Origin: Trichosphaerium sp. ATCC 40318
Taxonomy: Eukaryota; Protista; Tubulinea
DNA length: 64,000 nucleotides
Direction of reading: 5' to 3'
Assembly (NCBI GenBank): GCA_038496445.1
Contig: JALMLS010000342.1
Location: 62,001-126,000, forward strand
Below are positions 6,401 to 10,243 of this stretch, piece after piece (position 1 is the first letter of the stretch; each line of letters starts with the position of its first letter). Position numbers and translations under genes: made by a program. The notes beneath the pieces are model-generated. The model did not search any database, was not told the DNA's origin, and worked only from the letters and a program-made list of their open reading frames with translations.

Positions 6401-8421
6401 AAAAATCATCAAAGAAAGATAAAGCGCCTAAGATAACAGGACATTTTCTTCAGCATAAAGCGTCTGAATTCCGTCCCTTAGATGTACGTTACCCTTAGTT
6501 CTAATAAGCTCTAATGATTGCCCCGTAGTTGTCAGTGACAAAGGTTATGTCTTGGAAGCTAAAGAGACCACTTGAGGTACAGCTTAAACAAGCTACAACT
6601 GACAACTCACCAGCATCTCTAGGTTAGAGTCCTGTATTTTATGGCACAAGATGTACGAGAAAAAGTTCGTTACTTGTTTGAACCAAAGAAACGCCGTGTG
6701 GGCTCGAACAAAAATCAGCATGTTGAACCAGGTTCGTTAATATCCTGCGCCCATAAAAACCTTACATCAATATAGCTTGGATGGCTGGTAAACATAAAAC
6801 AACAGTTCAGGAATCTGTTGCCAAATATGTATTGTATTCTATCCCAACATATATTGATAAGGTCTTCCGTGCTGATTATCGTACGTGTGAAACTATTTTA
6901 GCCATGTACTGTTTCTTAGCCTGTATTTAGAGAGTGGTGATTCAGAGAGCCCTAGAGACTATTGCCCTTATAGTTGCCCTACTCTCATTTTACTTATTGA
7001 CTCCCTCACAGCATTCTTTCAAAACGCTAGCTCTGAATCACATGTTTTAACGGTCTTAAAAGGCATGCCTAAGACTACAAGCCCAGCAACTGCGTTCAAA
7101 AGTACGTGTGGAATACATCTTGTGGCAGTAACTAACAAGGTTTTTTACGTTAGTTTTCGCCAAGTATATTGATCCAGATGTTGCTACTGATTTCTTGACA
7201 TCCATGTCCTTTCTTCAGCTTTGCAAAGCTCTATTAAAAATAGTACCTGAAAATGCACGTGAGGAGTTGTCAGAACAATTCGGAAATATTGCAGAGTCCA
7301 TGCTGAGTGCGTTTTTTTTATTCGTTCAAAAAAAAATGACTTTCCTTTATAGGGCGACCTTGGCCTTCTACAGCTCTTATAGCGGCTCAGTACCAGACAT
7401 TATTATCTATAGTAGTCACGTACTCCCAAGAGCCTCTAGTGGCGTTACAAAAACTGACACAATTGCTTGCTGCGCCTATGGAACATTCGGAGTTTTCAAC
7501 GCTTACAACGAAATCTTTTAGGCACTACTACAAAGTGACCTTTCAGGTACGCACTATCGGCGTCAATCCACCAACGCACTTACAACACGTTTCAGCAATT
7601 TACGAAGATGTTTGCAAAGTATAAAAGGAGTATGGGCACAAGAACAGTGAGAGAGTCTATATTCTTGTTAAAGAAGTACATTGCTATTTTCAAGCATTTG
7701 ATACTTCTGACAAGAGTGCGTGATGCAATTTAAGATATTTTTTACGGTTACAACCTCTTGATTAACCTCTTATTCGTTAGGGTGAGAAATGCGAACTGGT
7801 TAACTTTGATGTTACTCTAAGACAAGGAAAGAAAGTTATCGATATTTTTGTGTCAACTGTAATGGACATGTTGAGCAGAAATTTTACTGCTTATTCCGAG
7901 CATATAAACCCTATTATAAAGACCCTTCAAGCGGGCACAAGGTATTAAAATACGCGCGCAATAACTAAATAACTAATTCTTCCCGCGTAGACAACTACAT
8001 CACATTTGCTCAGACTCTAAGGTCAAGTCGAAAAATGTCCGTCTTACGCTCATACCATCTCTAAAGAAGAGCCTCGAACAACTTTTGTTCAAGGCCAAAA
8101 CTATGCTCACAAAAAATAATTTTATGGACGCGTTTTGGGTTGGTAACCTCCTTCACAAAGACATAAGAGGGCGAGGTAAGTAGCACGTGGTAAATATTGA
8201 GCGCACTCACGAGTTTAAAAGTCGTTGCATCGCAAATAGATGAAGAAGAGCAAGAAAACGAAATTGTCGAAGAACAGAGCGGAGAAGTGGTAGAAGACGA
8301 AATAGAGGAAGACTACGATAGCGATGGCGTTGATGTAGATATGGCAGACGAAAATGAACTAGTTTCGTGTAAGGAAGAGTATCACAGCGAAGAAGACGAT
8401 GAAATAAGCTTCTCTCAGTAA
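3480..8421 (+). CDS. FANCD2: Fanconi anemia group D2 protein (~23 introns)
   Basis: SLAKMLLQIDALQPKL, LILGQFRWLDRVV, REIITCLPEI, monoubiquitination-site region IYVEKFTSSQESHCKRIGIIAA, AINWIRELINAF, C-terminal AFWVGNLLHKDIRG and an acidic tail. Confidence 0.93.
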
Positions 8422-8727
8422 TAAAAAAACGGTTTTGTTGGCATTTTTTTTGTCTTTAATTATTGCTCAAAGTATGATGCGAGTGAATTTATGAACAACA
8501 CAAGAACTGGTTTTTTATGTGTGATGAGGGTGCAGAGGGCGATTTAGAGAGATTTTAAGGGTTAAATGTAGTGCGTTAACCATCACGTGTGTTAGTATCA
8601 ACGTTGTGCACGCTTTTGCAACCACATTAAACGTAGAAATTGGAATAAAGACAAAGTTAGTGATTTTGAGGACGTATGGCAATTTTTTTGATTTCACTTG
8701 CACCCCTCGTAAAGTTTGTCACTAAAC

Positions 8728-8781
8728 TAGCCGTTATATGTTTTGGGTAAGAAAGTAGCCGTTGGTTTATTTTGCGCCAAA
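8728..8781. promoter_or_regulatory. Two MSA/Myb-like AACGG elements plus an E2F-type site upstream of the small basic protein gene
   Basis: TAGCCGTTA (8728-8736) and TAGCCGTTGG (8756-8765) read YAACGGCTA on the minus strand; GCGCCAAA (8774-8781) reads TTTGGCGC on the minus strand. Confidence 0.45.
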
Positions 8782-8827
8782 CCAGAAATTTGACCAAATT
8801 TTTGCTATTATCTAAAAATCAACAACC

Positions 8828-9210
8828 ATGCCAGCTCGTCGTAAATCTACCAAGAAAGCCTCCAAATCTTCCAAAGGAAAGAATGTCACCCTTGTACGCT
8901 TTACCTAAACAAGTTATGGCGGTTTTTAACGATTACCCCTAGTTCCGCAGCCTAGAAGAAATCATGGACGAAGCCAAGTCTAACCCTGATGCAGGAAGAC
9001 AATTGAGAACCCGCGTCGCAAAGAACACCCTCGACGGCAGGACTGTCAGTAAGTTATACCTTGTTTTGTGCAAATAAGGCTTAGTATTCATTTTCCTTCC
9101 TAGACAACGATACCAAGATGGTATACGGTGACTGGGGAAAGCTTCGCTTCACTGGCGCCACCAAAAAGAAGTCTCCAACCAAGAAGCGAGGCAGAAAGTC
9201 CAAAAAGTGA
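8828..9210 (+). CDS. Small basic (Lys/Arg-rich) protein of ~92 aa, histone H1/HMGA-like in composition, 2 introns; absent from the ORF track
   Basis: Spliced product MPARRKSTKKASKSSKGKNVTLFRSLEEIMDEAKSNPDAGRQLRTRVAKNTLDGRTVNNDTKMVYGDWGKLRFTGATKKKSPTKKRGRKSKK*. Codons are strongly C/G-ending (GCC, ACC, AAC, AAG). Confidence 0.8.
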
Positions 9211-9595
9211 ACGTTAGAAACTTTTTAGCGCGCTTGCAACCGAAACTTTGCCAGGCCTTGTGTACTATTTGACAACGTAGTGTATTATATAAAAAAATTG
9301 GTTTCGAATGCCGCCTTGCATTATTTATTATTTAATTTCTTTTTGTTTTTTTCAGGCGCAAAGTCCCTTTGTATGTTTTTTTTTTCAATGTCTTTATTTT
9401 TTTTCTCTATTGGCGTATGGTTGCAATTTAGGTTCTCGTGCTTTTTGGTCTTTAAATGCCGCGTTAATTTATATGCGTACTACTTTACAAGTGTTTTATA
9501 ATGCGCGTTACGCCTTTTGTGGCGCCGCAATCTTACGTCACATGAAAAAAAAGAAAAATTAAGATTATGTGGTTTCTACTTTTCTTGCGTTTGGG

Positions 9596-10243
9596 TCAGT
9601 CTTTGCATTGGTAGGTCTGGGCCTCAAGGAAGTTTTTAAGGCCATCTTCAAAACGAGCCCAAGGATGATTTACAACCGAATTTAAAAATGTTTCAAGGCT
9701 GAGGCGTCTGTCTTCAATAAATTTAGGATCGAAACGGCCTATGCGAATTGGTTAATTTGGAAAAAATGTTGTGTGGCAAATAGATTTTTCTATGGAGGTT
9801 TTAATCGTTGTCTAGGCGTACCATTGCTTATGTTGAACAAAGAGAACATAGTATTGCCAGGTAATTCTGCGATGGTGAGGCGTTTACCCTTCTCGTCGAG
9901 TTTTTGCTTTAGATGTGCTCGTAACCATACAAATTCAGAGTAGCGGCGTCGTACGGAAAAATCCGTAGATTTGAAGTCTGGTAGTGTTGTCTGTTCGCAA
10001 TTATTAGGGATTTGGTGTTATTTACACTACGTATTAACGGTACTAAAGCGACCAACGCACCTGTGTTGAAATTTTGTAGTCAGTGTACGAATTCTTTCCG
10101 TTGGCGTCCTGATGAGTGATCGGGTCCGTCACAGAAACTGTAATGTATTCTGGAACTTGGTAATCACCTGAAATTCTCTTTCGTGACTTCTTCTTTTTCT
10201 TTTGCTCTGGCGCAGCAGCTTTCTTGTCTGTGGCTTGTGACAT
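9596..10243 (-). CDS. SNX3: PX-only sorting nexin (SNX3/SNX12-like)
   Basis: ITVSVTDP, YTDYKISTQTTLPDF, SVRRRYSEFVWLR, LPG, FDPKFIEDRRLSLETFLNSVVNHP. Confidence 0.8.

Follow-up and report, generated by a model that had tools for sequence, protein, structure and literature searches.

The gene at positions 8828–9210 of the window (the whole stretch of DNA that was analysed, 64,000 nucleotides in length) encodes, in a marine amoeba, a small, strongly basic protein whose N-terminus reads like that of a histone. Is this a chromatin protein, and how is it related to the organism's own histones? An earlier, sequence-only reading took it for an orphan chromatin-like protein with an H3-like start and a CDK site, made in abundance and perhaps standing in for the linker histone H1.

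The gene and its transcript

The gene lies on the + strand in three exons, with its ATG at 8828 and its TGA at 9208–9210, and sits between two transcription units that end near 8440 and 9440. It is present in one copy in the 70.3-Mb assembly. Its features are as follows.

8823–9308, + strand: transcribed span defined by spliced contigs; its 5' end lies beyond what contigs can prove, and poly(A) follows 9308
8828–8893, + strand: exon 1, 22 codons; K/R/S-rich N-terminal tail, starting MPARRKSTKK
8894–8942, + strand: intron 1, 49 nt, phase 0, GT..AG; joint 8893>8943 in 4 runs
8943–9048, + strand: exon 2, 35 codons and the first base of a split AAC codon; predicted helical part of the core
9049–9103, + strand: intron 2, 55 nt, phase 1, GT..AG; joint 9048>9104 in 4 runs
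9104–9210, + strand: exon 3; predicted β-hairpin (KMVY / GDWGK loop / LRFT), 17-residue K-rich C-tail with SPTK and KKRGRK, TGA

Evidence for transcription comes from four public runs, each from a different study, whose Logan contigs were aligned to window positions 8400–9700. In each run one contig has both introns exactly removed; the spliced contigs begin at 8823–8834, and one of them reaches 9308 and continues with 22 A's. The exact skipping of the introns, together with the poly(A) contig, indicates that the mRNA, ∼380 nt long, is spliced and polyadenylated and that its leader is very short. The gene is thus real and transcribed, and it lies at the coordinates given for it from the letters alone. 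Intron 1 starts with GTACGC and intron 2 with GTAAGT, both ending in TAG; the 5' splice site at 8894 accordingly has GTAC, compared with GTAA in the second intron.

Contig identity to the window is 100% in three of the four runs. The remaining run (X10, a marine metatranscriptome) holds an mRNA variant, 95–99% identical, that has the same splicing and no indel, indicating that the gene is present in a second strain or species. Among the differences listed for this variant are two synonymous changes, a V>R change in the second helix and, directly before the C-tail, the changes A>D and T>A (window 9014–9016, 9141 and 9158–9160); its YGDWGKLRF hairpin is intact.

Both neighbours are transcribed in the same runs. 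The upstream unit has a very acidic C-terminus (E/D-rich ORF 8197–8421) and its contigs stop at 8429–8440; the downstream unit, on the − strand at 9439–10243, starts at 10243 with a K-rich N-terminus. Contig depths of the 92-residue gene are 67, 240 and 527, compared with 10–33 for these two neighbours in the same runs, but contig depth cannot rank genes, and the very high expression proposed for the gene is only hinted at by these values. That proposal had been drawn from codons described as strongly C/G-ending. The direction of the bias is right, with a GC3 of 0.57 (34 of 91 whole codons are C-ending) compared with a mean of 0.36 and a range of 0.27–0.40 in the real frames of fifteen other long open stretches of the window; its strength was overstated, since GC3 in exons 1, 2 and 3 is 0.41, 0.60 and 0.65, and so just 0.41 in the first.

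The histone-like tails

The product has 92 residues, a mass of 10.4 kDa and a pI of ∼11.6, with 28 Lys and Arg residues against 8 Asp and Glu (net charge +20). Acidic residues are absent from both the 19-residue N-tail and the 17-residue C-tail, the latter having 10 Lys and Arg residues and a single SPTK. Every motif quoted in the sequence-only reading is present in the product, and the weight that each can bear was judged by shuffling each tail's own residues. Shuffles of the N-tail yield AR(R)KST in 0.13% of cases and RKST in 1.3%, and shuffles of the C-tail yield RGR in 0.8%, so that the N-terminal motif and the RGR triplet exceed what composition would give. The supposed CDK site fares less well; SPTK is present and conforms to S/T-P-x-K/R, but 5.5% of C-tail shuffles yield SP.K and 14% yield [ST]P.[KR], which is not beyond chance. 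SPTK is a candidate phosphorylation site. The likeness to an AT-hook does not hold either, as the C-tail reads KRGRK, with Lys in place of Pro after RGR. As in HMGA and other AT-hook proteins, an R-G-R triplet is flanked by lysines in a small basic protein; unlike them, it lacks the defining proline (RGRK, not R-G-R-P) and has only a single triplet.

A composition of this kind would also suit a small basic protein that binds RNA, be it nucleolar, ribosome-associated or of another kind, whose lysine-rich tails would direct it to the nucleus or nucleolus and bind RNA, and whose likeness to histone tails would be compositional. Lysine-rich termini are typical of nucleolar, ribosomal and RNA-binding small basic proteins, and this counts against taking them as a mark of chromatin. 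The small size, very basic character, codon bias and contig depths above those of the neighbours are likewise what ribosomal-type genes would show. No ribosomal or nucleolar family is matched when the protein is searched exon by exon, however, and we consider an RNA-binding role quite unlikely, given also the character of the N-terminus and of the promoter, described below.

The closest relatives of the N-terminus were found in the organism itself. A search of the genome for core histones located H2B in two genes (L014:1495–1854 and L013, on contigs G000:C50 and C82), with the start MPARKSTKTTKAPAEVSKG. Both of these H2B genes and a linker histone gene on contig C7 (L022) begin with MPARKSTK, and the 92-residue protein begins with the same residues and one extra Arg. 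Local alignment of exon 1 with the H2B start gives a score of 40, which is matched by 54–89 of 20,000 composition-preserving shuffles, and at the DNA level 22 of the 24 bases that make up the first eight codons of H2B are identical. When written as a degenerate DNA pattern, M-P-A-R-(R)-K-S-T-K occurs at four places in 70.3 Mb, namely the two H2B genes, the gene for the 92-residue protein and the H1 gene on C7, and at none in the reversed control. This N-terminal identity with H2B and H1 is above what composition gives, and to that extent it argues against an RNA-binding protein with an incidental likeness to histones. A third H2B gene (L012) starts with MPRKSPKK instead.

At the sequence level, then, a PARKSTK cassette is found at the head of H2B, of one H1 and of the 92-residue protein in this organism. 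The link to chromatin that had been proposed is borne out by this match to the organism's own H2B and to one of its H1 proteins, although the model is not the one originally named. The H3 of this amoeba reads A-R-K-S-T, as do H2B and the C7 H1, whereas the 92-residue protein reads A-R-R-K-S-T. The extra Arg shifts the alanine from position −2 to position −3 relative to the lysine, making the comparison with H3 less apt than that with H2B and H1, and MPARKSTK is the closer model. The MPARKSTK H2B itself carries A-R-K-S-T, the motif that surrounds K9/S10 in H3.

Comparison with the organism's own H2B (L014:1495–1854) shows how far the likeness extends. Eight of the first nine residues are the same, in addition to the identity in DNA, and a further K/A/S/K/G stretch can be aligned. 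Beyond the tail, in contrast, the 92-residue protein has no histone fold; there is no Pfam match and no long central helix is predicted. An H2B/H1-type tail appears to have been copied on to a non-histone protein, and the presence of one short cassette on H2B, on a linker histone and on a protein that is not a histone would point to a common reader, kinase or import step.

Such a tail need not package DNA. The protein could act as a decoy that displays an H2B/H1-type N-tail and shares or competes for the importins, kinases, methyltransferases and readers of histones, without DNA packaging of its own. Human PAF15/PCLAF, a small S-phase protein, has an H3-like N-terminus that is read by UHRF1, and other histone-tail mimics include the ARKS cassette of human H1.4 (K26/S27) and the ARKT of G9a. 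Like these, the 92-residue protein is not a core histone yet begins with a short basic segment of histone type that includes a K-S pair, and it resembles PAF15 in its small size and, as its promoter suggests, in S-phase expression. It differs from them in that its model is H2B/H1, not H3, and in that the A-R-K-S register is broken by the extra Arg. The restriction of the cassette to H2B and one H1 is in keeping with a decoy, whereas the shortness of the copy (8 of the first 9 residues), the shift in its A-R-K register, and the C-tail and net charge of +20, which fit direct binding to nucleic acid, are not; we regard a decoy as distinctly improbable.

Promoter elements and probable replication-coupled expression

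Upstream of the gene, two AACGGCTA(C/G)TT elements and one E2F-like TTTGGCGC site all lie within 105 nt of the ATG. The former resemble the plant MSA consensus, YCYAACGGYYA (PMC5405339).

8725–8735 (G000:C51:70725–70735), − strand: distal Myb/MSA-like element AACGGCTAGTT, 10/11 to YCYAACGGYYA
8753–8763, − strand: proximal Myb/MSA-like element AACGGCTACTT, 10/11 to YCYAACGGYYA, inside the 14-mer CCAACGGCTACTTT
8774–8781, − strand: E2F-like site TTTGGCGC, fitting TTTSSCGC, 47–54 nt before the ATG

The E2F-like site overlaps CCAAACCAGAA, which is one base off ACCAACCAGA, a core histone promoter box. Matches to TTTSSCGC number 11 in the window, where 4.97 are expected, and none of 100 shuffles reaches 11. 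These copies, spread from 3299 to 61039, mostly read TTTGGCGC or TTTCGCGC; in 64 kb, only 1.4 copies of the 8-mer TAGCCGTT would be expected.

Elements of the same kind recur at histone genes. The 11-mer AACGGYTASTT occurs 119 times genome-wide and, among the matches listed (100 of 119), only the promoters of the 92-residue gene and of the H2B variant L012 have two within 150 nt. The L012 promoter has two AACGGYTACTT and also holds the 11-mer AACGGCTACTT. The promoter of the H1 gene L003 has AACGGCTAGTAA, and that of the C7 H1 has AACGGTTACTT, a second AACGG and TTTGGCGG. E2F-like sites are found at −41 to −123 in H3 (L005), the H2A/H2B pair (L013/L016) and H2B (L014). The longer 14-mer CCAACGGYTACTTT from the promoter of the 92-residue gene occurs three times in 70 Mb and not at all in the control; the copies belong to this gene, to the C7 H1 and to one coding exon. 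The last copy (L028), being inside a coding exon, was set aside as a promoter block and taken as chance, and the copy shared with the C7 H1 has the opposite orientation relative to its gene. Core histone and H1 promoters (L005, L008, L013/L016, L014 and L002) also share a box at about −60 to −110, which reads CTGGTTGGT with a T-run after it or, as the complement, ACCAACCAGA, and which is often present in both orientations.

Because the motif was refined after the sequences had been viewed, the counts at histone promoters are partly circular. This does not apply to PCNA and RNR2, which were picked before their promoters were inspected. The PCNA promoter (L031, G000:C198) carries AACGGCTACTT at −190 and TTTGCCGC at −70, with two further AACGG(C)TA elements, and the RNR2 promoter has TTTGGCGC at −100 and AACGGCTAGTAA at −25; both pair an E2F-like TTTSSCGC with AACGGCTA elements. 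RNR2 is found at two loci, L034 (G000:C19:487632–491261) and L035 (G000:C118:190126–193755), which have equal scores and an identical 450-nt upstream sequence; either the gene was duplicated recently or the assembly has left two copies uncollapsed.

Since E2F-like and MSA-like elements are common to PCNA, RNR2 and histone genes, the cell-cycle-type promoter envisaged in the sequence-only reading is plausible, and replication-coupled transcription of the 92-residue gene is likely on sequence grounds. In plants MSA elements mark G2/M genes, and PCNA, RNR2 and histone genes are S-phase genes elsewhere. The amoeba promoter thus resembles plant MSA/3R-Myb and E2F promoters in its two 10/11 elements and its TTTSSCGC match but differs in that these putative elements sit on PCNA, RNR2 and histone genes. 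This distribution suggests an S-phase regulon that would use a Myb/MSA-type site, and the compactness of the promoter, with two AACGGCTA elements and an E2F-like site so close to the ATG, would make it a useful model for amoebozoan cell-cycle transcription.

The promoter bears on two of the alternatives. Elements shared with PCNA, RNR2 and histone genes speak against the RNA-binding reading. They are, on the other hand, what would be expected of a regulator acting at the replication fork or in S phase by protein binding, such as a disordered protein associated with PCNA or RNR, that has no structural role in chromatin. The promoter grammar is the same as that of PCNA and RNR2, and the protein is small with disordered tails. 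Direct reading of the exon sequences, however, finds no PIP box (Q-x-x-[ILM]-x-x-[FY][FY]), a point of difference from PAF15/PCLAF, and no APIM motif, and the tails look histone-like; we judge such a regulator to be very unlikely.

A histone-like N-terminus combined with a promoter of DNA-replication type indicates that the product is probably a lineage-specific chromatin protein. The fuller description, in which a small chromatin protein with tails of histone type is lineage-specific and coupled to replication, is one that we place at an even balance of probability on the sequence evidence. Such a protein would consist of a compact core of two helices and a β-hairpin between two unstructured lysine-rich tails, the N-tail reusing the start of the organism's own H2B and one H1 and the C-tail resembling the C-terminal tail of H1. 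The E2F-like and Myb/MSA-like sites would drive its synthesis in S phase, at the same time as that of the histones, and the protein would be imported into the nucleus and bind DNA or nucleosomes both by the charge of its tails and by its core. Kinases could loosen this binding at serines beside basic residues (RRKS-T and SPTK), as in linker histones. If this is correct, the histones of this amoeba are accompanied by a small chromatin protein that has not been described before and that may be confined to a narrow lineage.

The core and its possible relation to linker histones

Structure predictions were made with AF2 for single exons. Exon 2 alone is predicted to form two helices (exon residues 4–13 and 15–30; pLDDT 88.7), and exon 3 alone a β-hairpin (strands KMVY and LRFT joined by the GDWGK loop) followed by an unstructured tail (pLDDT 75). 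The core of ∼55 residues would thus comprise two helices and then a β-hairpin, although single-exon folds cannot show the real fold.

Searches with exon-sized queries match the core to no known family. Pfam hmmscan, exon by exon with E up to 10, gives no family, and for exon 2 the same is true of Pfam, NCBIfam and PHROGs together at E up to 10, MC1 and DVNP included. The core histone fold (PF00125) is not matched by any exon in Pfam, and helices of 10 and 16 residues with a hairpin are predicted in its place. Exon 3 has just two matches in PHROGs, with E values of 0.077 and 0.13; the latter, to a WhiB-like family, was taken as chance. Searches of PDB sequences by exon return chance matches alone (E 2–9.5), for example an RCC1 repeat with GDYGKLG, and for exon 2 the ESM Atlas gives recognition under the useful level and returns unnamed short clusters. 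With phmmer, exon 2 (35 residues) finds nothing at E up to 0.001 among 1.84 billion representatives, a library that does not include this organism's proteome and so gives no self match. A word search with the 44-residue open frame around exon 2, among proteins of 24–77 residues, gives no candidate, and a degenerate DNA pattern for YGDWGKLRFTG has no match in JGI metagenomes or in IMG/VR. The single match to a degenerate DNA pattern for LEEIMDEAK (L030) falls where an unrelated ORF ends, on a contig of 173 kb, and was dismissed as chance, and readings of the core as ribbon-helix-helix, SAP/HeH, Sso7d/Cren7 or an H-NS-like hairpin were set aside as ideas from sequence without tool support. These exon-sized queries, in libraries lacking the organism's own proteome, point weakly to an orphan protein.

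The idea that the protein replaces H1 is not supported, since the genome has canonical H1 genes. Three matches to PF00538 exceed the cut-off, on contigs C143, C19 and C79, and the C7 gene is a fourth; the six-frame PF00538 search missed it because introns split the domain.

G000:C7:797159–800182 (L022), − strand: C7 H1 gene, exons at ∼1399–1524, 1113–1208, 990–1070 and 637–918, three introns, MPARKSTK start

The C7 protein has a globular domain and a long TTKK/PKK tail with KKRGRK and SPTK. When compared with a GH1 profile made from 32 H1 sequences, its second exon reaches 21.7 bits, a score attained by none of 1000 shuffles, and we conclude that the gene encodes a true linker histone. Its nearest library match, in libraries without the organism's own proteins, is 49% identical.

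The common N-terminus, the shared promoter block and a phase-0 intron at an equivalent place led us to test the core as a worn H1 globular domain. In both genes the phase-0 intron falls directly before F-x-S (GNVRK|FIS in the 92-residue gene and KNVTL|FRS in the C7 H1); the second intron of the 92-residue gene is away from the H1 position. Exon 2 aligns with the second exon of the C7 H1 without gaps from the first residue, 9 of 32 residues being identical, with a score of 25 that 26 of 2000 shuffles reach in what was one of 18 comparisons. Exon 2 obtains 2.4 bits from the GH1 profile, where it aligns to helix 3, and 11 of 1000 shuffles reach this value; exon 3 scores −1.1 bits. The hhalign probability for the core against GH1 is 0.6%, and BLASTP detects no similarity. 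With p ∼0.01 the likeness between the core and GH1 is marginal, and we treat it as a lead, not a finding. The original observation that the core cannot be recognised as a histone fold or as an H1 winged helix therefore stands, given the Pfam, hhalign and BLASTP results.

Other points of comparison with the C7 H1 (PF00538) fall on both sides. The two proteins have the same tail-core-tail layout and the same MPARKSTK start but for one residue, the phase-0 intron before F-x-S, K-rich C-tails with S/T-P-x-K and KKRGRK, and Myb/MSA-like promoter elements. KKRGRK was discounted as evidence of kinship, its DNA pattern being as frequent in the genome as in the control (33 compared with 36). The 92-residue protein differs in its length (92 residues compared with more than 200), in its C-tail of 17 residues compared with ∼100, in its core of ∼55 residues and not ∼75, in its lack of the S-x-x-A-I-x-K-Y-I helix-2 signature, and in scoring 2.4 bits on GH1 compared with 21.7.

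From these comparisons it seems rather unlikely that the gene descends from a C7-like H1 and that its core preserves helix 2, helix 3 and the wing of the globular domain in worn form. It is unlikely, too, that the protein is what might be called a mini linker histone, a drastically shortened H1 descendant forming an abundant second class of linker-DNA protein beside canonical H1. Such a gene would still carry the S-phase promoter, the intron in front of F-x-S and the H1/H2B-type N-terminal cassette, together with a tail that is of H1 type but short, and what is left of helix 2, helix 3 and the wing would constitute a new minimal DNA-binding fold.
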